From Zygnema circumcarinatum SAG 698-1b (Eukaryota; Plantae; Zygnematophyceae): DNA of 64,000 nt. Location: positions 248,001 to 312,000 of the forward strand of contig CM074819.1 in NCBI GenBank assembly GCA_037447605.1, read 5' to 3'. Positions 378-57,408 of the stretch are shown piece by piece. Position 1 is the first letter of the stretch. Every line of letters begins with the position of its first letter. Both the position numbers and the translations under genes were made by a program. The notes below the pieces were generated by a model that was given only the letters and a program-made list of their open reading frames with translations, had not been told where the DNA came from and ran no database searches.

Positions 378-3300
378 CTTTCCAAACGCAACATCGCCGC
401 ATGTAGGGCCACAAAAGCACACACACTGCCCTTTATAGCCTGCTTCCAGCCAAGTTGCTTCCTAAGAATGAGAATGTGATCTCTTGAAAAAGGAAAAATC
501 CACCCAAAGAATGGAGCAATCTTCAAAAGGAATCTAATGAAAGTATGGTATAATCTTCAAAAGGAAAAGAATCTAGTGAAAGTATGGAGTAATCTTCATA
601 AGGAACGTCTCTGATGAAAGTATCGAGTAATCTCATGATTAGAAGGACTCACATTTTCGTCGGGATACAGAAATGTTGGTGGGCTTAGGTTGTAATAGTC
701 TCTCAAGCATGAAATTGGTTTGAATCCGAGCAATTGGAGGCCTGGATAGTTGGCCACTTTTTTCACCTCCTTCAGTTCCTCCGCTTTGAAGATCACTCGA
801 GCACTATAGCAACACGCAGACAAAAGAAACTCAACACAAAGAATTATTTTGGGAATTTAGAGGAAAAAAAAGCATAGTGAAATGGAGCCAGTTCGGCATT
901 GCAGGGAGAACAACCAATAAAAAACAATTGGCCAATATTGCCAGTTTCAAAGTAATTGGTCGAAGGAAAGTATTTGGATGGCCTATTCTGCGAGGTTCAA
1001 GTCAACTTAACTGAATTGAACACTTCACAACTCCAAAAATAAGAAAACATCCAGTAATTGTATAGCAACAAGGACAATGAAGTGGGTATGAATGAGCTTA
1101 AGATCAAGCTTGAGGTTCATATTCAAGCATGAAAGACTTCCTAGAAATTCAAAATGCGCATTTTCAGATGTTGTAGATCACGAACAGATTGCCAGATATT
1201 CTCCACAATGCAAATCTATGAGTTGGTAGTTGCCATTCGATTACTACCTGCCGTAGAACTGAACCCGTTTAACGGGCTCAGATAGAACGGCCCCTGTGTC
1301 CTGGCAGATGAAGGTAGTTTCTACCTGCGGAAAAGGAACAAGTTATAGCTTAAGAAGAGGAAGGGAAGGAGATAAAACGATAAGGAATAGTGAAAGAGAT
1401 AAGAAAAGAGGGAGTAGGGGGAGGGCGAGAGCGGAGAGGGGAGAGGGGAAGGGGGAGGAAGGGGGGAGAGGGGGGAAGAGATAGAGGGAGAGAGGGAGAG
1501 AGAAAGGGAGAGGATGTGGGAGCAGTCTCGCTGAGGATGGACAAGTTTCGACTCACCTTCACACGAGCATTATCGCTGGACCGGACATAGGTATCCTTTG
1601 CTGCCAAAAATGACCACAAGACATATTTTGTCATATAAAAATCCCTCCCTTTCCTTCATTCCACCCTCTCTCCCTCCTCTGTCCTTCAATCTGACCATCC
1701 CCCACACCACCCCCTCTCTGCAACCGATCAGAATGCAGAAGCCAGGTACAGGTGCCAAAAATGATAGGTTATTATGCTGACTTAAGCAAACATGCAGCGG
1801 AGTTTTTGTATCACCACGCTAAGGCCTCTCACTCAACTCTCCTCTCCATACCTTGTTCATTTTTGCACCTCACTTCCACCTCCCTCCCAACTCCTCTAGC
1901 CCGTCCCTCTGTCCCTACCCCTGTCTGAGAAACTATCTGTAAACTGAGAAGTCTGTACATGTGACTGCTAGAATAAACCACATAGTATGAGCTTTAGAAG
2001 CATTAAGGGTCTTAAGCCTCACCAAGAGTAGCATGTCGAATCAGAGCATAAGTTCGCATCGCAATTTCGATCTTATCGTTTAATCGCAAAGGAACTCGAG
2101 CAACCATTCTTTTCTTATAGATTTTTTTCCGTATTCGAGAATGTAGGTCTTCAGTCCTGCCAGAGACCCCCCCCAAAAACAAAAAAAATCAGCTTTCAGT
2201 AAAAAACTGTAACTATAACTGTTCTGTAAGTGAATTTTCCATACCCCATAAGATTGAATCAATGAAGAATGCAGATAAGGCTTAATTGAGTTTTTCACCC
2301 ACTTTCGAATAGAGGAGCTCATAAAGCTGGAAGTCTCATCCTCGTCTACTTGAACCATATCCTACACAACCCCCCCAAAATATTATTACCATTTAAATAG
2401 CGAAAAAAACATTTTCTCTATTGAGCTTGAACGGTTGGGAAAAACAGTGCTTGATAAAAAAAATTAACCTTTTTAAGGCAGTCTTCTTTAGCTCAATTAA
2501 TAAACAAAATTGTAGAACAGTTTACATATATTTTCTATCTCCTCCTCCTCCTCCTCCTCCTCCTCCTCCTCCTACTCCTACTCCTCCTCTCCTCTCTCCC
2601 CCTCCCCTCCTCTCCTCCAGCTACGGGAATACGCAGAACCAACAGACTTACTGCATAAAGAATCATTATGTTGAACTCCTCTCCCGGCCGATCCATCGGA
2701 AACAACTCCATTGCAATTCCAAGATCTTGGGCATCCTGAGAAAAAATTATCTTCTCAACACAATATCCAACAGCTCGTTCTACATAGCAGAAAAAAGCTC
2801 TAAGCTCCTGAGAAGGTGAGGGAACGAAAAAAGGGAGGAGAATTTCAAAATCCGAAGAGAAAAAAAATCCAAAGATATTAAGAAATTCAACACCTACCTT
2901 GGCCTTTTGAATTGTTGTTCTTCGCATATCTGATTTTACGAGTGGTTCCGCATCGCCAAAAGGATCGTCATTATTTGTAAACAACAATAGCCGCTTGTTT
3001 ACATTCTTTGCAGGGCTGGTAAAAGGAGAAAAAAATAGCCTCTAGGATTTAATTGTTTTTCTCGAAGGAAGAACAAGGCTTTGGCATTTCTATGGGTTTC
3101 GAACGGTTCAGGGACTCGTGAGACAATTTGGCTTTTATATTTTGAGCTAAGAAGTACAGAGAGAGACAAAGATAGGGAGACAGTGAGGGGGAGAGCGAGA
3201 GAGAGAGGGGGGGGGGGGAGAAAATGGCCGGGTCATACGTTCAGATAAAACTACAAAGATTTAGACTTAATGGTAAGCCGACTTTAGGGTGTAACAATCC

Positions 3301-38440: not shown

Positions 38441-38629
38441 GTTAGATTTGAGAATTAGAACGCTTTAATATCTAAAAGTTTCAAACTCTTTTAGAACGTT
38501 CGTACGATTGTTGAGATTGTGCAACACATACGGTTTGTACGGCCCACGAAGTGGCGCTGGCCTGTCAGTGGCTGCCGGATGTTCGTACGATCGTACGATT
38601 CTCCGGCAAGTTTTAAGGCGTTTTATAAA

Positions 38630-39573
38630 GGGTAGTGATATTTCCACCCCTTTTTTGGATCCAAACACCCCTTCCCGGCCGGGCAGATTTCAAAAAGGAT
38701 TAAAAACGGAAAATGCTTTTTTCACACCTTTTTGGAATCGATACCCACCCTCCATCGGCAGATTTTATTTTTGCGAAACAAGGAAATAACCCGTCACCCC
38801 ATTTTGAATATCCCGCCTACCTGAATTTTTTTCACAATTGCGGTCAATCGCAGCCGTCGATTCCCTCGCAGATCGCAACACGGCAGATCAGTATTTGATC
38901 TGCAGCCGGGCTCGGTCACAGCGAATGGCACGTGCCCACGTATCCCGCCAAACTCGTCTCAAAGGTTTGTCCGTACAAATGTCGTACGGTCGAAACTTTT
39001 GAGGAACCCAATAATTCGTACATTGAGAGCTTGGACCAATCAAAGTTTTCCACGTCATAAATTTAACACGTGGCAGATGTTGATTGGCTGAGAGCTGACA
39101 ATGCACGAGATCTCGGGCCGGGGGACGCGCGCACTCGCACTTGCGATCCGGCTTTGGCGGGACTCGTGGGCGCTTTCCATTCGCTAAGATCGAGCCCGGC
39201 TGCAGATCGAACGGTGATCTGCAGTGGTGCGATCTGCGAGGGAAATCGACAGATGCGATTGACACGCACGTGTGAAGGACGGACACCCGCGAACGATCTC
39301 GTGGCGGACGGATCTTCCGCTCCGAGCGGATTCGGGCAGGCAGATATTTCTTTCCCTCAAAAAAAAAATTCAGGGAGGCGGGATACAGTATTCAAAATGC
39401 GGTGACGGGGTATCATTTTCCTTGGTTAGCAAAAATAAAATCAGCCGACGAAAGGTGGGTATCGATTCCAAAAAGGTGTGAAAAAAGCATTTTCCTTTTT
39501 TAATCCCTTTTGAAATCTGCCCGGCCGGGAAGGGGTGTTTGGATCCAAAAAAGGGGTGGAAATATCACTACCC
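38630..39573. mobile_element. 944-bp foldback element of the same family, perfect 8-bp TSD TTTATAAA
   Basis: Starts GGGTAGTGATATTTCCACCCC and ends GGGGTGGAAATATCACTACCC; TSD at 38622-38629 and 39574-39581; centre near 39060. Confidence 0.88.
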
Positions 39574-39594
39574 TTTATAAAACGGCCTGACTTT

Positions 39595-39975: not shown

Positions 39976-39985
39976 NNNNNNNNNN
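39976..39985. other. Assembly gap (10 N); others at 259-268 and 12017-12026
   Basis: Runs of n; true gap lengths are unknown. Confidence 0.99.
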
Positions 39986-40271
39986 CGAAGCGTGGAGCGT
40001 ATTTGATGATGCCTCTTATCTAGTGAAGAAGAATGGATGTATTATAGGAGATGAAGAGCTTAAAAGGACAATATTTGCAGCGGAAACGACAATTGAAGAA
40101 GAAGAGGAACAAAGACGCGACATGCCTATAAAGCCAAGGTATGCTATTGGCTTTCTGCTTTCTGCTTTTCACTTTCTGCTTTCTGCTCTGTGCTTTCTGC
40201 TTTTTGCTTTTGGCTTTCTACTCTTCGCTTTTTGCTTTTGCTTCTCTCTCGTGATTCCCCCGCTTCGCCGC

Positions 40272-41792
40272 TAGACTCTGCATTCTTGCATTCCCGGGTG
40301 ATTCGCATTCTCTATTCTCGTGATTCTCGGTGATTTTGCTTTCTCGATTCTGCATTCTCGCATTCTCAAGATTCTGTATTCTGCATTCTCAGATTCTGTA
40401 TTCTCGTGATTCTCAGCATTCTCAAGATTCTCAGATTCTCGTGACTCTCAAGATTCTCCTCAGATTCTGCATTCTCGCGATTCTGCATTCTGTATTCTGC
40501 ATTCTCGACTTCTGTATTCGCGATTCTCAAGATTCTACATTCTCGCGAATCTACATTCTACATTCTCGCCATTGTTGGCTTCGCTCGCGATTCCCCGGTG
40601 ATTCCGTGATTTTGTACAAGTGTCGCCGTACTTGCATTCGGGTATTTTGTATTCTCGTGATTCTCGTATTCCCGCATTCCTCGCTTTTGGTTGGGCTTTC
40701 TTCAAATTAGGTACATTTTATGTCACTCTTTTCAAGAATTATTGAATTAAGGGTTTCTTTTCTCTCTGCTTTTGTGCGTATAACCATGTACCAAAGCCAC
40801 CATTAGTTTCTCAAGTGGTGTTGACTCAAAAATCTAATGAAGGCATCATAGCACGCCTGCACAAAAGCAATTTGTTGCTGGGTTTCGTTAAAACAGGGTC
40901 GAGTGCCGCCCACATCTCGAAAGAAATGGCAAGATTTTGGTTTTGGAGATTAGACACGGTACTCCGTTGAACGCAGTCCTTTAACCCCCAAAGACTTTGT
41001 CTAATAGTATTTTTGCATCAGAACATGCCCAAAAACTATCAACATTTTATAACACACACGATCACGATTCAGCGTAAAGTGTTTAAAACTGCAGTTCGTA
41101 AGTATACGCGGAGATCATGGCCCGCTTCTACCGATGAAAGACGACTCAGTAAGTTATCTTTTTGTTTCTTCTCGCTTCTCAAGATTCTCACAGATTCTGT
41201 AGATTTCCTCGCGATTCAAGATTCAAAGATTTTGCATTCTCGCGATTCTCGCATTCTCAAGATTCTCGATTCTCGCTTTCGTGATTCTCGCATTCTGCAT
41301 TCGCAGATTCTCAGATTAGATTCTCGGTGATCTTCTCGCGATTCTCGCGATTCTCGCAGATTCTCCGTGATTCTCGTGATTTTGTATTTTGCTTTCTCGA
41401 TTCTCAGATTCTCAGATTTTGTATTCCTCGTGATTCTCGGTGATTTTGCATTCTGCATTCCTCGCAGACTTCCTCGCGATTCTCGCGATTTTGTATTTTT
41501 GCATTCTCAGATTCTCGGTGATTCTCGCGATTCGGTGATTTTGCAATCTCAGATCGATTTTGCATTCTCAGATTCTCGTGATTTTGTACACCGCATTCTC
41601 GCATTCCGTATTCTCGATTCTGCATTCTCAGATTCTCATTTTGTATTCCTCGTGATTTTGCATTCTCGTGATTCTCGTGATTTTGCATTCTCGGGTGATT
41701 CTCGCATGCCGCAAAGATTTCCCCTCGCGACGCCGTGATTTCGCAGATTCTCGCGATTCTCCGTGATTCTCGCAGATTCTCGGTGATTCCCC
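40272..41792. repeat. Two degenerate (G)ATTCTC(G) microsatellite-like tracts (~40272-40690 and ~41165-41792)
   Basis: GATTCTCG, CATTCTC and GATTTTGC variants throughout; they generate spurious ILDSR-rich ORFs. Confidence 0.85.
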
Positions 41793-41932
41793 GTGACTTC
41801 AAGCAGTTGTTTGTCGCTTCTTTCCCTCTTTGTCGCCTCGACCTCCTTCTCTCCCTCCTTACTTGCTCTCCCCCTCCCCCCCCCTCCCTCCTCCTCCCTC
41901 TCTAAATGTCTTTTAGTTTTTTGTGTCTACAG

Positions 41933-44821
41933 GATGTTCATTGATCCTAAACGAGGGACTGTTAAGGATAAACTAGCGCTTTCAGACTTTCAAAAGTTAT
42001 TAAGGTATATGGGGTCATTCAACAACGAAACATATTTAAAGTATGGTAAGTATGGTAGCTACAGCAAAGGCAATGATGCTTCGAGGAGATGACCAAAGAT
42101 CAATTCGGTTGGTCGATCTATTTATTGATGATATGGCTACAACAGCTATTGGCCCATCTGAATGTACTGTCCTAGGTGTGGTGTCACGTGGGGGGAAAAA
42201 GAACTCGGGAGGAGCAGATCCGGAATTTTGCAGTCATGGATGGATATCAATAATGATATTTGTTCCACGTGTTCATTGTATCGTAAGAACCTCCTCCGTG
42301 ATCTTCGAGCAACTACCTTTTGGTGAGTCTAAACTTATCCAATCAACTATTATTTGTGTATTTTGTTTTATATTTTTGCACAAATGTATTGTTTTTATTG
42401 ACACGTTTGTTTGTTGATTTGCAGGTACAAAACCTTATTGTTTCCATCCAAAGACTCCACCCAGGTTGAAATGTGTAATGCGGAAGCACAAATCAAAAGT
42501 TCATGAAAAAATCATTGGAGCACTCCTAGGATCTCCGCTTGTTCAGAACCTTGCACATATTCCGTGGCGCGGCAGCAAGGGAATGTTTCGCGCACTCTTG
42601 TGGGTTTGATCAAATCCAGGTGGCAGGGAGGTGGGGCCAAGCTTCAAATAAATCCCTTGCAATCAATTACCTTTCTTCGATTGTCCCTCCCGTCTGTAGG
42701 GTGCTTGCAGGATTCAAAAAGGAAGGCGATGATTATTTTTTGGAGCGTTCTTGTCTTAAACCAAATGAAGCGCTTGTGAATATGGTTTTCCCATTTCTTC
42801 CCGACCTTGAAGCTATTGTACAGCAGGTAATATGTCATACTGCATGGATCTTTTGGCTGGAAGTCAAAGAAAGGGTGTGAAAGAGATTGAGGGGAGGGGA
42901 AAGGGTTAACGTTATGTGTTTTTATGGGTAGGTTACTCGTTGAGGGCCTTTTAAGTCTCGGAATCTTTCAGCAGGAGGCTTTGTGGACATGCTGCGTTAT
43001 TTTGCATGTGTTTTATTGCAAGATGCATCGTTCGCTCCACAAATTCCATTGTTCGCGAATCATCCATTCTTCCAACGGTGAGCAATGGGTATGGTCTTCC
43101 TTTCAAGGTTGTTACTGCTTTTTTTGTTGCTGGCCCTTTTGCACTTGCTGCTTTTAGTGCTCCTTTCTCTGCTTCTGCTGCTGCTGCTCCTGTTTCAGCT
43201 GTTTTTGCTATTGTTGAGAAAACACTGCTACAGCTGCTGTTGCTACTGCTGCTATGTTTTCTGCTGCGACTGCTTCTTTTTTTGCTTTTGTTGTGTTAAG
43301 TCACAAGTGGTGATGCTGTTGCCGCGGGCTGATTGGAGGTGAGCTGAGAGCAAGAAGGAGTGAAGGGGCTTCATTAACGGGTGAGGCGGACGTCAGCCTG
43401 TCTTGAGTAAGGTTGTTATTTCGAAGAAGTTCTCAATTTGGCGCAGAGCGCCAGGATCGAAAGGAGCAGCCAAGGAGGCCTCGGACAGATCCGCTAAGAC
43501 AACACACCATGGACTCGAACTATGGTGAGTAAAACCATGCTGCATCACCATCACCATCTCTTAGTGTGTAATAAACAAAATTGTATTGATATCCCTCATT
43601 ACAGTCCCATTTTCGCCACTAGTTGTATAGTTTTCAAGTGTCAACTTTTTTTGTTGATTTATGGGCAAAGAGCAATATTTGCAGGGGAGCAATGAACACC
43701 AGACACAAGTGGGACGACAAAGCCGGGGTGATGGCATGGACCAAAGGTCAGAGCTGGGAAGCGAAGGTAGAGGGGAGTACTTGCAAGGCGGCATGCAGGA
43801 AAGGACAGATGTGGGCAGAGAAGGCAGGGGCCAAGACATGCAAGGAGGCACGGGGCCAAGCATGGACGAGGAAATGAACGGTTGGGGCCAAGGCAGTCAA
43901 AGAGGCAGGGGAGCAAGCATGGACGAGGAAAGAAACGGTTGGGGCCAAGGCAGTCAAAGAGGCAGGGGAGCAAGCATGGACGAGGAAAGAAACGGTTGGG
44001 GCCAAGGCAGTCAAAGAGGCAGGGGAGCAAGCATGGACGAGGAAAGAAACGGTTGGGGCCAAGGCAGTCAAAGAGGCAGGGGAGCAAGCATGGACGAGGA
44101 AAGAAACGGTTGGGGCCAAGGCAGTCAAAGAGGCAGGGGAGCAAGCATGGACGAGGAAAGAAACGGTTGGGGCCAAGGCAGTCAGAGAGGCAGGCCAGGA
44201 ATGGGGCCAGGCATAGAGCCAGGAATGGGGCCAGGAATGGGGCGAGGAATGGGGCCAGGAATGGGGCCAGGAATGGGGCCAGGAATGGGGCCAGGAATGG
44301 GGCCAGGAATGGGGCCAGGAATGGGGCCAGCCATGGGGCCAGCCATGGGGCCAGCCATGGGGCCAGCCATGGGGCCAGGGGCTAAAGACGGTCAGGGACT
44401 TAGAGTGCATGTTGGGAAACAGTTAGATAGATATTTAGTCAGCATGCACACAGATGTACTTAGCTTGTGGAAGGAGTTCTGGATTGTCGGGCCAGAAGGA
44501 AAAAAGCCCATCATCGAATTGATGGCATTTTTTGGTGTGACGCGTTGGTACAGTGGTGGACGACAAGGAGAAAATAATCGGAAAAATGCTTGGTGGAATC
44601 GAATGTATCCTATTGTCATAGAAATTATATGGAGGATGGATGTGAGGGTGGTGAAGACGGTGAAAACTGCAGTGGCTGCATCGCCCTTCAATGATGAAGG
44701 GGCTGTCAGTCCAAAACCATTGATGGTTTGGTCCGGGCTTAAAAGGTGGGATGTTGTTAAAAGGGGGAACAGTGGGACTGGTCGTGAAGCTTTGGGGAAT
44801 GTTGGAAAAGAACCGGATTGA
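41933..44821 (+). mobile_element. Crypton-like tyrosine-recombinase DNA transposon gene (NDC10_II-like YR domain plus C-terminal GCR1_C-like domain), spliced and decayed
   Basis: FIDPKRGTVKD, MMLRGDDQRSIRLVDLF, RGGKKN, LHIFRGAAARE..QIQVAGRW..NYLSS..RVLAGFKK..YFLERSCLKPNEALVNMVFPFL, AGGFVDMLRYFACVLLQDA..NHPFF, and terminal exon 43685-44821 with VLSLWKEFWIVGPEGKKPIIEL..RW..RMYPIVIEI. A +1 frameshift near 42040 and an in-frame TAG at 42527. A further upstream exon is possible at 39986-40137. Confidence 0.8.
43861..44378 (+). repeat. In-frame coding tandem repeats: 57-bp unit x~6 (MDEERNGWGQGSQRGRGAS), then 12-bp unit x~15 (GPGM/GPAM)
   Basis: 57-bp units start at 43861, 43918, 43975, 44032, 44089, 44146; ATGGGGCCAGGA units from about 44200. 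Confidence 0.92.
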
Positions 44822-47800
44822 GCAAATGGCTTTTTGGAAAATGGTGTAAAGTAAAAAAAAGAATGATGTGTGGCTATAGTATAGCAGAGAAAAGGAAAAG
44901 GAAATAAAAGTAAATTAGAATGTCCAACTACATGCGGTAGAGATTTGCAGCGCTTCTTGGAGAAGGCCGCCATTGTTAAAGTAAGCTTCTTTGCCCACTT
45001 TTCTCCCCATGCATTTTATATTTTTCTTTTTCTTCATCAACTTGGTGATTGTTCTTCTTCTCCCTTCCTCCCTGCAACTTGCATCCCTTCATACCTCCCT
45101 GACATGAAAAAATCTGCTTTTAGGGTTTGTTAGGGTTCTTTTCTATCTCAATCCGTGTTCAGTTTTATGAAGTCATATTGCTTGACTTTAAAAAAAGCTT
45201 ATATTTGGTTTGGTGGTGACAGCAGTTCAGATTTCGGCGGCGGCCCACGTGTTGGTGGGAGAGCCTCGCCTCGCCTCGCCTGTAGAGTAGGGCCACACTC
45301 CTCTTCGGCTCGCGTGTACAAACCACAGGAGCTCCTCTGAAGGTGGGTATGGCCAACAATTATCTCTCTGGTCAATTGCCTGAGTATGATAAGGGGAAGT
45401 GAGTATTATCATCTGAAACCTTTCTTTTTTTTTTTTCTTTCTTTTTTGGAGAAGGTATTAGAGGTAGGGCCTATTACTGAGACGATGATATCAAAGCGCA
45501 CGCAGGGGATGGAGTTAATGGATGTGTTTGCTGGGAAATACAGGAACTATGGCGCAGCTTCACGGTGTGGGGCTAGTGCGGAAGCTCTTGCAGCTACTGT
45601 TTTGGGGATATTCCCCTTGTGTGGCTTTCCCCGCCACTGGCGCGTCATGGTGATCTGCTTCTGCCTCTTCTTCTGATGCTGTGAATGAGGTAAGCAGGCC
45701 TTTCTACCCCATTAATCTGAGACAGACTATCTCACATTAAACCGTAAAGGGAACAAGATCTTCTAGGTGTTGTGGCTCAGGCCCGCCAATGGCCAGGCAT
45801 GTGTTTAGTTCGTCCTAGAAATGTGGTGATGTGGAGCAGAGTGCTGTAAATAGTGAGTTCTCTCAATGAAGGGTGTTCCGGTGTTGGCTTCACCTCTAAC
45901 CATCCGGTCCCGTTAAAGTGCGATACGGCCGTTACATTTTTGTACCATACATCATTAAGCCCTTCCTGTCCGTCTATTCATCTTTTTAATAGCTGGAGGG
46001 TTCGCAGTATTTAATGTTGCTTTGGTGCTCACGTTGTTGTCCCTTAGCAGTTGCTGTTCGTCAGGATTCGTTTTTTCGGGAGCATATGACGAGCTTTTCT
46101 TCCCTCCTTCAAAAAAAACGAGGAGTCTTTTTTCCGGCCTCGCCTTCTCCAACAATGCTCTCTTGGGAAAGATCACCGAAAATGAATAACGTCTAAGAAG
46201 ACTCTGTCGTCACTTGCCATGAGAGCGCCCCCTTGCAAAGGCGGCTTTGAGGACAGTTTCGCTTCTTTCAAATTTGTTTTTTTTTTTTTTTTTTTTTTTT
46301 CTAAATATGCTCAGAGCGAGAGAAACGCTCGCTCTGAGCTTTGTTGTCAGTCAAATAGAATTCGCATGCTCGGAAGTGGGCAAGGCTTTGCCAGGACCCA
46401 AATTTGCACTGTGCATCCAATTGTGACTGAGAGCCGACTTTGTAAATAAACGGGTGGCAACTGAATGAAAGCGCCCCTTCTTCTTCCTCCTCTCTATTGA
46501 AAAGGTCCATATGGGGATCGTTTGTGGCCTTGGAAAATGTAGATGAGTTGAGAGCAAGGGAGAGGTAGCGAGGCAGGCCGGGGAGCAGGGGGGGGAGCGG
46601 AGCAGGTGGGGAAGCGGGGCAGGGAAGAAAGAGGGGTGAGAAGACGAGGGAGAAGAGAGACAAAGAGGGAGGGAGAGAAAGGGCGACAAACAAATACATA
46701 GATAAATATAGGGGTGGAGAGGGAGAGAGAGAGGGAGAGCGAGAGGGAGAGGGAGAGGGAGAAAAGTACATGTCGGCAAGCACCTGCCCTACAAGCTCCG
46801 TGGAGTTTTCTCCAACAGCAAAACACCTGCCGTACATCCCGTACACGACATCGCAATTGCTGCCGCCCGACTCAATCTGTACGGCGGACGACAAAGGGAC
46901 GGGGAGGGGAGGGAGAGAGGCAAGAGAGCCGACCCCAGGACGCTGTCGGGCGGTCTGCCATCCCCCCAAGACATGAGCGTCGGCTGGCAGCGCTGGTGCG
47001 CGCATTCCGCTAAAAATTGGGGGAAATTATTCCACTCACCGCCTCTCTATCGCGTCGCTCCAGTTGTCGAGCAAACGGAAGGTCGGAGTCGTCATGCAAG
47101 TGTGCGTAATTTAAATACAAACGACTGAATGTTTTCCCTTTTATACTCTTGTGCGGGCGTGCGTGGCCGTGCCAGACGACGATTCGGGGCAGTTGCAGGA
47201 CTGCATCGTACTCAGTACGGGACCGTACGTAGTTCTGAAATTAGAAATTGGACACCCCGAGTGTAGCAAGGCCCCAGCTGAACTGAGGGCTGAATTGTGC
47301 TCCACTAGTGAGAAATGGCCGACTTTGTAAATAAAAGGATAGGCTCTGGATGAAAGGCCATGTCAAACCTCAAGACATATGCTGGGGTCGTTTGTGAGAA
47401 TTTCAAACGCTTAGAGCAACGGAGAGGGAGGGAAGCAGAGAAAGGATAGAGGGAGAGGGAGGGATGGAAAGGCGGGATGAGGGAGAGGGAGGGAGGGAGG
47501 GTGGAGGGAGGGAGGGAGGGAGGGAGGGAGGGAGGGAGGGAGGGAGGGAGGGAAGGAGGGAGGGAGGAAGGGAGAGGGAGGCGACCTCGAGAGTGGACCC
47601 CTGGCCAGCCTCAGGAAGAGCGCCTCCCCCACCCACCCTACCTCCCCTTCCTTCCCCCCTTTCCCCTTCTTTCAGCATTTACTACTTCCTCCCTCTTTGT
47701 TACATTCCTTGGCATTGCATAACTGGGAACCACTGTCCATGGTCCTATCTCGCCATCACTTGCTGGTAAAACATGGGCGTCTGCGTGAGAGACCAAATTT

Positions 47801-54400: not shown

Positions 54401-57400
54401 TCAAATCTACAGTTGGACCAGTGGTGATGAAGACATTCGGGAACAGATCTATATTTGGGGGAGTAGCAGGTGATACAAACGAGCCCCCCTCTTTTTGGCA
54501 TTAGTTTACTGGGCCAGCTTTTACTGTGTTTTGGGACAAAGGGTTGGTAGCAAATGGAAACTGTTTTTTCCTGACAAGGGTTCTCGCGCTTGAAGGGAAT
54601 TGTTGTTTTCTCCCCTCACTTGGGTTTTCTGGGAACTGTTCGCTTGCAATGGGAGTGTGTTCTCAGAGTATGAGCGAGATTTTGAACGAGCTCGGGAATG
54701 GAATGATACTACTGCCCGCCTCGATTATTGGTGGAGGAGACTTGAAAGAGATGGAGTGGCAACCGTCACACCCGAATTTCGGGAAACTTTGCAACTTCAA
54801 AAGTTTGTGCCATCTGGGCACACGCTGCACTTGTTTGTCCGCTACAGGTACTTCCACTACACAGGTCGTGGTCCAATTGCTAATCTTGTTTAACCCACCC
54901 CTTGCTGTGTTGTCAGTAATTTGGAAGTAAGAAAACCTGGTTGAGAACATGTGAGAATGCTGTGACTTTATTGACTTGTTTGAGTTCGGTTAACTCCACT
55001 TGATCCCGATGAAAGGTTTTTTTTCTGAGTCAGCGAAACTTTGCCGACCAATAATTTAATGATCTGGCGTTTATAATTAGCAATTTTTTGTCAGTACATT
55101 CCGCTACATTTTCCCGGACTTGCAGTCAGTTCCAGTTGACTCGAGTTCCTGAAGCTTTCTCGAAGGCAACAATAACCCTTATGCTTAGCCTGACACTAAG
55201 TGTGCCCTTCTTGCTTGCAGTGCTTATCGAGATTCATTGAATTCTTTCTATATTGTTGGGCTGGGAGCAAACAAGTTGATGGAAAAAATTGGAAAGCCGG
55301 TTACCAACTGTGCATGGTTACCGGGGAAGATAGACGACATCCTTACACTGGGCAACCTATAGTGAGTAAGCTGGTTTCCAGTTCTCTTCGTTTTAAGGTT
55401 GCCATCCACTGTTGGGAAAAGCATCTGTAAAGACTCCGCTACAGTCGATGTAAATCAGCTTTGCGATGAACGCCTTGAAATGCCTTAGTTCCTACCGCTT
55501 GTGCCCCCCGTGGTTTCTCGGAGAAGGCTTGCGCTTCAAAGTCATTTGCTATGGTGAACGATATGAACTGAAATCTAAAGAAGAACTATTTTCGTCTGTA
55601 CTAGGAGTTGTTCTGAGGGTGCAACTGCCAGTAATGACATCAAAGGCTAATCAGGCTCGATCCCATGACGTGTTCCTTTCGCAGTTCGTCCCCGCGCCTT
55701 GCGGTTACCTCGAAAGTGCTCATTCTGAAAGGCCACAGGAGAGACATCATGGAGACGGACTACCAGACTCTGGTAGTGAAGTGCACTTTTCTTGAGCCTG
55801 TTGGGGACATTCGCGGAGGCACCCTCTTCTTAAAGGTTCCCACTCACAAATGTGAGTTTTTGGAGACATCCTGTCACGATGACCTTTTCAAGTTAATGGT
55901 TGCTAACTGAGATTCAGGATGATAAGGGGTTAGTACGTAAAGGCTCAAGAAGAGTGTGAGGATTGGATAGGATGGTTTAAAAAATCTCAGTGCAAATCAA
56001 CTTGGGAAGTTTGGCGCGTTTTAAGCAACTGGAAAGATTGACTTTTGCCTTCATGATGAACTCCATTCAATAGGCTTTGAAAAACCCTGTTGATGGGTTG
56101 GTAGCTTGCCCCATTTGGCCCTGAGAAAATCGATGAACCTTCGCCCGACCCCAAACTATCCCTTTTTTTGTGCTGCTATTCGTCTTTGCAGTGGACGACG
56201 ATGCTGGAATCCCAGAAGAGGCGGAAATGGTCCCTGTGCTTCACGAGTCTTCGCTTGACGAGAATCTTTTCCGACCACCCGTTGTAGGCGAAGAGCCACA
56301 ATACCAATATCAACACATAATGTGTGGAGAACCGCTACGGAATGATGTGAATGCGTCCAATATTCGGGAGTGGGTCTTTTGGTACAAGGCGTTGTTCATG
56401 AACGACGTGCATTTTTTTATTTATTTGCCTGAAGAGATTACTGGTGAATTAGCCGATGTTCTTCAACATTTCGTCCATCGGAAGTTGATGACATTGATCG
56501 ACATCCGCGAGCAGGTTTCTTATGAAGGGTGGTACTACAACCAGGCGCTGTTTCTGAACGATTGCATTCATCGGTCGCGACACCGAGCAGAGTAAGTGAT
56601 TACTTCTGACTGCTTTCAGAGCAGTACATCGATTTGGGTTGCGTTTTCCCTTAGCACTCCTGCTATAACATGTGGATTCCTTTTCTTTTTTTCGATGAAT
56701 GAGTGGCTGGATGTTCTGTGAGACAGGTTTTTTCAACCCATTGCAAAAGTTGACTGTTTTTTTTTTATGCGTTGCAATTGCAGGTGGGCTTTCAATTTTG
56801 ACTACGACGAATTCGTGTATGTTTGGCAAAAAGGTGTCACAATCAAAGACGTGCTGCACAAGTACAAGGACAAACCCTACTTGTCGGTGGGATGCTGGGA
56901 CTACTCCGCAGGGCTGTGCATTCCGAAGGAGCGGGAGGGCCAATGGCAGATTGAACGCATGGTGTTCCGGAAGGAGAAGAAGAACTGCACGCGGGCACGC
57001 TGTTCCATGCACTCCGATCGCAGGAAATGGGCGGCGAATCTCAAGATGACCCTTGTGGTGAACATCCACTTTGTGTATGTGTTTGAGTCCCCTGTGGCCG
57101 GTCTTGTTCTGGACGACCATTTGGCATACATCAGGTGGTATTCGCCGATCAACTCAACAATAGGAGGCGTAGTTTTAGACGAGAACGTGCTATTTATGGC
57201 GCACTACCGAGGGCTGTGGAGAAACCAATGCAACGTTGTTGTCCGCCCAAGTTTCACCGCAAAATACGACCGATATGATCAGGATCTGGGCCTTGTGAGC
57301 CGGAAGTGGGACGGCGTGGAGAAGTACAAGATGGACCTGTCCGTGGCCCGGGTGGCGGGGCAGCTAGTGCAAGAGAACCACTGGGAGCACGTAGGCACCG

Positions 57401-57408
57401 AAGCGTAG
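51405..57408 (+). CDS. GT92 / GALS-like beta-1,4-galactan synthase homologue with two N-terminal PAN/Apple modules; 5' exons uncertain
   Basis: Phase-consistent exons 53552-53770 (PAN1), 54251-54469 (PAN2), 54667-54847, 55221-55361 (SAYRDSLNSFYIVGL..CAW), 55685-55851, 56192-56591 (MCGEPL..IREWVFWY, YEGWYYNQALFLNDCIHR) and 56784-57408 (WAFNFDYDEF..RRKW..VNIH). A candidate TM exon lies at 51405-51508 (GILLFLKILLSISLYLLLYG). Confidence 0.85.

Follow-up and report, generated by a model that had tools for sequence, protein, structure and literature searches.

The 64,000-nucleotide (nt) stretch of Zygnema circumcarinatum SAG 698-1b analysed here (assembly GCA_037447605.1, contig CM074819.1, positions 248,001 to 312,000; called the window, with positions counted from its first letter) probably contains the coding core of a CryptonF-type element, a multi-exon tyrosine-recombinase gene of the NDC10_II class on the + strand. 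Five colinear coding pieces (A to E), located at 41933-43077 and 44447-44635, match CryptonF-type tyrosine recombinases. Elements of this type are already known, and the gene is a new member and a new host record. As read from the sequence, the identity of the gene as a recombinase is secure because phmmer, profile, language-model and Ndc10-structure matches are all clear. That the gene is part of a transposon is suggested by the protein family to which it belongs.

The catalytic motifs of the window allele were located by a three-frame reading of 41700-44900. The R of MLRGD (MLRGDD) is at 42082 and the K of GGKKN is at 42196, both in frame 1, and frame 2 contains HIFR at 42554-42565 (H at 42554 and R at 42563), the W of GRW at 42632 and the Y of NYL at 42668. 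The LLQDA segment follows at 43013-43027, past a short interruption after the recombinase motifs, and a WKEF...NNRKNAWWNR block is found about 1.4 kb beyond it at 44447-44635, within an open frame of 386 amino acids (43661-44821). The tyrosine-recombinase set R-K-HxxR-W-Y is complete and in order, and each residue aligns with a conserved column of the family profile; in the window allele the catalytic residues are spread over three reading frames. All of these motifs are where the original prediction, made from the letters and a list of their open reading frames, had placed them. The protein would carry the R and K of box I, then the HxxR, W and Y of the recombinase, then LLQDA and, past a low-complexity linker lengthened by in-frame tandem repeats, a C-terminal domain that occupies the place of GCR1_C and resembles it weakly.

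A phmmer search of 1.84 billion representative proteins with the 116-amino-acid catalytic piece yielded 79 matches at an expect value (E) of 1e-3 or lower. The best of these has E 2e-14 and 43% identity, and the two best are exon-sized fragments on metagenome contigs. When 20 of the matches were scanned with Pfam, 18 carried NDC10_II (PF16787), nine of those 18 also carried GCR1_C (PF12550), and one of the two without NDC10_II was a low-complexity false match. A family profile made from 28 of the longer matches was searched against all stop-to-stop pieces in the six frames of the whole window. Exactly three pieces were significant, on one strand and in the right order: B (42040-42414, profile 144-219, E 1e-6), C (42530-42877, profile 279-367, E 2.3e-30) and D (42944-43078, profile 374-415, E 3.5e-6). 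The rest of the 64 kb contains no further significant profile piece in any frame (next best E 1.6). The same profile, searched against solved structures, matched yeast Ndc10/Cbf2 at E 5e-16. Additionally, a protein language-model search (Atlas) places the catalytic piece next to NDC10_II clusters, with a score of 0.97 and 186 shared features, and ranks DUF3435 and Phage_integrase clusters far lower. The assignment to a CryptonF-type, NDC10_II-class recombinase, which had been predicted, is upheld by the match of the catalytic piece to the profile of 28 homologues (E 2e-30). Nothing useful was obtained from word-indexed protein searches with piece C, the 386-amino-acid open reading frame (ORF) or a 15-sequence profile, a PDB search with piece C alone found only chance matches, and a metagenome locus scan with a 3-sequence alignment gave 384 pattern matches of which 0 were confirmed. 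An Rfam scan of the window had no match, and an exact look-up of the 386-amino-acid ORF retrieved no record.

The closest relatives are on metagenome contigs from ENA (L001, ERZ19570860, and L002) and JGI (L003, L004 and L005; 3300045963, 3300046018 and 3300045919). By tblastn, all five window pieces match the relatives' contigs in order at 42-52% identity. Piece A (41940-42044) matches at E 1.4e-7, piece B matches L001 at E 3e-20 (49% identity), piece C matches at E 7e-22 (43% identity) and piece D at E 5e-4. Piece E matches L003 and L004 about 2 kb downstream of their recombinase (E 9e-9, 41-44% identity). L001 and L003-L005 resemble the window gene in the order of the five pieces and in two intron positions and phases. 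They differ from the window locus in guanine-cytosine (GC) content, which is 0.39 and 0.54 in the relatives, and L003, unlike the window gene, has an extra intron within the C-terminal domain and no tandem-repeat linker. In a maximum-likelihood tree built from 88 rows and 105 columns of the catalytic block, which is poorly resolved overall, the window sequence is sister to ten metagenomic fragments with support of 89/85, a value below the star threshold of the tool. The Tilletia and Fusarium clades, the only named relatives, are separate from this grouping, and no named green-lineage protein is among the matches. The gene thereby appears as a member of a clade otherwise seen only in metagenomes. 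Another metagenome contig (L007, 179-3934) carries a distant NDC10_II gene beside an opposite-strand element resembling a long interspersed nuclear element (LINE), with endonuclease, reverse transcriptase and RNase H.

The C-terminal block shares its gene-family architecture with the nearest metagenomic relatives because all five pieces match the L003 and L004 contigs in order. The domain itself is weakly assigned as GCR1_C-like, in the position of GCR1_C. With a full-length family profile, the C-terminal piece falls on the GCR1_C columns, but at E 2.7. A profile of 20 homologue GCR1_C domains gave it 10.8 bits against a shuffle maximum of 10.2 (n=2000), a narrow margin, and hhalign of a two-sequence profile against 16 GCR1_C domains gave a probability of 57% (P 1e-4, 32 columns). 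An Atlas search with the C-terminal piece was uninformative (best score 0.76), and an AlphaFold2 model of the domain, with a predicted local distance difference test of 62 and a predicted template modelling score of 0.43, was too poor for a fold search. Of the predicted architecture of NDC10_II plus GCR1_C, the first half is supported, with NDC10_II in 18 of the 20 homologues scanned, and the second is a tentative assignment.

The structure of the gene (Table 1) was derived from Logan contigs of one RNA-labelled run (X20), which were placed on 41850-47700. Spliceosomal introns had been predicted, and one of them is verified by RNA. The phase 2 intron divides the W codon of the family 'WY' motif, with two bases before it and one after. 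L001 and L003 carry introns at the same positions and phases as both 42323-42424 and 42827-42931, at 42-52% protein identity, and these conserved intron positions argue for a long history within intron-splicing hosts.

Table 1. Features of the recombinase gene and its transcript in the window
Feature	Positions	Strand	Basis and remarks
Possible 5' coding exon	39990-40137	+	Directly after 10-N gap 39976-39985; GT donor at its end; no Pfam match
Presumed long intron(s), may hold undetected exons	40138-41932	+	Degenerate 7-9-nt repeats; no homology found
Exon, pieces A and B, with box I R (42082) and K (42196)	41933-42322	+	AG acceptor at 41931-41932; start of RNA contig
Predicted 102-nt intron, GTGAGT...CAG, phase 2	42323-42424	+	From sequence; no spliced contig spans the intron
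Exon, piece C, with HxxR, W and Y	42425-42826	+	Family profile, E 2.3e-30
105-nt GT..AG intron, phase 0	42827-42931	+	Spliced RNA contig of X20, depth 1317, 125 nt on shorter side
Exon, piece D, with LLQDA	42932-43077	+	RNA contig over 42930-43077; GTGAGC donor at 43078
Poorly defined intron(s) and small exon(s), with a CTG-rich low-complexity stretch among them	43078-43683	+	One weak RNA joint
Last large exon, window stop at 44819-44821	43684-44980	+	RNA contigs 43684-43905 and 44686-44980
Downstream spliced transcript parts	44981-46264	+	Introns 44981-45225/45230 and 45688-46048; exons without recognisable coding content; no Pfam match

Upstream exons exist because RNA contig 9 carries 593 further nt that were not placed in 41850-41930, the 80 bases before the exon at 41933. 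The possible 5' exon is a weak match to the N-terminal exon of L003 (35% over 26 amino acids, E 0.03). Between the two are about 1.7 kb of degenerate 7-9-nt repeats of the GATTCTC and GCTTTCT types (40140-41800), arranged in two blocks that flank a non-repeat island at 40700-41150; this repeat field is apparently within an intron of the recombinase gene. Past LLQDA, one side of the RNA joint 43077>43423 is only 21 nt long, and an AG is missing from the window at 43423; candidate splice sites in the stretch are a donor at 43526 and acceptors at 43603 and 43683. The last large exon contains the linker arrays, a 57-nt unit repeated 6.5 times (43827-44194) and a 12-nt unit repeated 15.6 times (44193-44379), both periods being multiples of three. 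The 386-amino-acid open frame was considered as a sign of selection and rejected because several frames of the arrays, on both strands, are free of stops. The downstream joints 44980>45226/45231 and 45687>46049 are canonical (GT..AG) with depths of 1665-3237. Another RNA joint, inside 42599-42700 (GT..AG, 100 nt, depth 87, 24 nt on one side), would delete the active-site W and Y and may be a minor isoform or noise.

The window allele contains three frameshifts, two in-frame stops and one internal deletion. A 1-nt frameshift is located near 42045, between ...ETYLKY and SMVATAK..., and a gap of about 10 amino acids relative to the closest relative follows GGKKNSGG. A second frameshift, near 42265, is indicated by the upstream piece being in frame 1 and RDLRATTFW in frame 0; RDLRATTFW splices in phase onto YKTLLFPS and fits the family consensus PDF..R..WY...LL. 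The frame breaks again at 42490-42496, an in-frame TAG is at 42527, and an in-frame TGA is at 42941, three codons into an RNA-verified exon. The frameshift near 42045, the frame break and the TAG had been predicted and were confirmed; the frameshift near 42265, the gap and the TGA are additions. In the window assembly the copy is a pseudogene, and at this locus it is probably old, fixed and single-copy.

The locus is also present in public sequencing data. Twenty runs, which come from nine studies and share one organism label, contain 33-57% of the sampled words of 41900-43800, and contigs of three DNA runs from three studies and of RNA run X20 were placed on the window. In the three DNA runs, contigs over the element have depths of about 540, 146 and 1075, compared with 420-530, 120-150 and 740-1050 in the flanks. 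The flanks are about 1-4% diverged from the window, similar to the locus itself, and the contigs over the element abut pieces that are identical to the window. Because element and flanks agree in depth and in divergence, the sequence in the runs is an orthologous, resident allele; the public runs carry a single-copy allele of a diverged strain.

Several lesions of the window allele are absent from the run allele. Position 42941 is G instead of T in four of four runs, changing TGA to GGA. The run allele has two bases fewer at 42525 and one fewer at 42538; with this change the TAG is no longer in frame, and no stop arises. Additionally, in the 16 loose letters that precede 42496, two A are missing from 42490-42496, which is the number that joins frame 0 to frame 2. 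Over 41931/41935-42174, the stretch with the 1-nt frameshift, the DNA and RNA contigs show one gap relative to the window, tabulated without its position, and zero substitutions. About 7% of positions differ between the run allele and the window in the lesion stretch, and it is very unlikely that three or four of the differences would coincide with lesions by chance. Because the listed run differences coincide with the window lesions, these lesions would have arisen in the lineage of the window, and decay may be strain-specific. The run allele has several further indels after 44641, in the C-terminal tail region, and because only part of the differences (12 of 84 indels and 40 of 109 substitutions) is listed, the run allele cannot be claimed to be intact throughout. 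It is transcribed and spliced and is free of at least three of the window lesions. The decay described in the original prediction is therefore correct for the assembled allele, which has more lesions than were noted, and at least three of these are missing from the allele in every public run examined. It is possible, though doubtful, that the strains of the public runs have an intact, transcribed and spliced recombinase gene that represents a live or recently silenced Crypton lineage of an intron-conserving clade in a streptophyte-type host, the reference allele being dead.

Cryptons are rare and patchy in distribution. CryptonF elements are known from fungi and oomycetes (Goodwin 2003; Kojima and Jurka 2011, PMC3212892), and yeast Gcr1, Msn1/Hot1 and Cbf2/Ndc10 are host genes derived from them (PMC3212892). 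In Chlamydomonas reinhardtii, CryptonF-1_cRei is active, with a CACCG terminus and a CAYCG target (PMC9977147). The literature agrees with the distribution given in the original prediction, namely fungi, oomycetes and a chlorophyte (PMC3212892, PMC9977147). The original prediction also took Cryptons to be uncharacterised in land plants and streptophyte algae, and a search of one literature collection found no description of a Crypton in streptophytes, charophytes, Zygnematophyceae, bryophytes or land plants, which is absence of evidence.

The window gene resembles fungal and oomycete CryptonF in its NDC10_II-class R-K-HxxR-W-Y recombinase, in the domain in the GCR1_C position and in its introns. 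However, its catalytic block is at most about 40% identical to theirs, it is outside the named fungal clades, its C-terminal domain is too diverged for Pfam, and its linker has grown by the 57-nt and 12-nt in-frame arrays. Fungal and oomycete CryptonF typically ends in terminal direct repeats of about 5-6 bp that match the target site. CryptonF-1_cRei, compared by description only, shares with the window gene a green-lineage host, the architecture of a tyrosine recombinase (YR) plus GCR1_C, and introns. It is multi-copy and has been seen transposing, whereas the window locus has a single, fixed copy that is broken in the assembly. On the model of characterised Cryptons, the encoded recombinase would excise the element as a circle. 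Yeast Ndc10/Cbf2 and Gcr1 belong to the same protein family as the window gene; they have lost the catalytic residues and are essential, whereas the window gene keeps the set and is dispensable in one strain.

The active Chlamydomonas CryptonF is the only characterised case in the green lineage in the literature searched. A resident, expressed copy, together with a metagenome-only clade in which intron positions are kept despite a protein divergence of more than 50%, would widen the host range of the family and would help in asking whether Cryptons descend vertically in green organisms. The broken reference and the apparently unbroken, expressed allele make a simple test case for distinguishing recent loss from continuing function.

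Several observations weigh against assigning the locus to a CryptonF element. A Pfam scan of six separate pieces gave no match, even at E 10, and the GCR1_C assignment of the C-terminal piece is weak and likewise has no Pfam match. The original prediction had proposed a check with NDC10_II and GCR1_C profiles; in that check Pfam was silent on every piece, whereas the recombinase profile built from homologues was strongly significant. For the N-terminal third of the protein, profile and tblastn searches yielded nothing but the one weak 26-amino-acid match. No second copy was found within the 64-kb window, no copy of 90% or greater identity is present elsewhere as judged by depth in the three DNA runs, and a repeat search of the window did not find terminal repeats of the element. 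The locus is at flank depth in the three DNA runs and is present in all runs examined, which is not the behaviour of a repeated mobile element. Mobility and its mechanism rest entirely on family analogy.

The same properties could belong to a domesticated, Crypton-derived host gene, comparable to yeast Ndc10/Gcr1 or animal WOC/ZMYM, that most strains would retain for binding or recombining DNA and that the assembled one has lost. The presence of one copy, with the depth of its flanks, at this locus in diverged strains, transcription and correct splicing of many introns, and a run allele free of at least three window lesions are all consistent with domestication, as is the greater RNA depth of the C-terminal exon compared with the recombinase exons. 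However, the catalytic set is fully kept, whereas known domesticated CryptonF genes have lost theirs (PMC3212892), and the assembled strain can do without the gene. The conservation that was observed is between strains 1-4% apart, and the marks of a host gene are catalytic loss and conservation across species. Domestication is therefore an unlikely explanation, and the gene is better described as the core of a CryptonF-type element.

A very improbable alternative is that the gene derives from a different kind of element with a tyrosine recombinase, for example a DIRS/Ngaro retroelement, a Starship captain or CryptonA/S. Such an origin would agree with the failure of Pfam to name the pieces directly, but 18 of the 20 Pfam-scanned matches are NDC10_II and many are also GCR1_C, the DUF3435 and Phage_integrase clusters are far down the Atlas ranking, and a scan of 19 flanking ORFs revealed neither reverse transcriptase nor RNase H; no long terminal repeats were found. 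Least probable of all is that the sequence comes from a fungus or oomycete, either as a contaminant or through a horizontal transfer that took place very recently. The named relatives, Tilletia and Fusarium, are without exception fungi, but the best identity among 1.84 billion proteins is 43%, the sequence is outside the named fungal clades in the tree, GC content is 0.48 for the locus and 0.50 for the window, and contamination, which the original prediction also disfavoured, is largely refuted, as far as the runs allow, by the flank-equal depth and equally diverged flanks in three DNA runs from three studies, by the presence of the sequence in 20 runs of nine studies and by contigs that abut identical flanks.

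Other features were noted around the CryptonF-type gene. A low-depth DNA contig of run X4 has a joint, 41886>44883, that skips 2996 nt and hence nearly the whole coding region. It was considered as an empty site and judged to be probably a low-complexity artefact, with 21 nt on one side and a CT-rich sequence joined to a GA-rich one. Downstream, 45182-45377 is a dispersed repeat because two of the three DNA runs show twice the depth there and part of it (45190-45269) is matched by an unrelated contig of 7.5 kb; the high RNA depth there probably comes from other copies. No DNA contig from any of the three runs covers 46358-46749, with both sides at full depth, and this stretch either was inserted in the assembled strain alone or could not be placed because of divergence or repeats; 56 nt of it (46416-46471) have a 75% copy at 47301-47356. 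A GT92 gene is located at 53.5-57.4 kb, identified by its exon at 56767-57405 (Pfam E 0.0017; Atlas 0.94); these matches identify the family but not the lineage of the host. Just upstream of the assembly gap, at 38619-39584, is a foldback-type element with inverted arms of 168 nt that are 95% complementary and 630 nt apart, and it contains two further nested inverted pairs, one of 92 nt at 85% and one of 24 nt at 96%.

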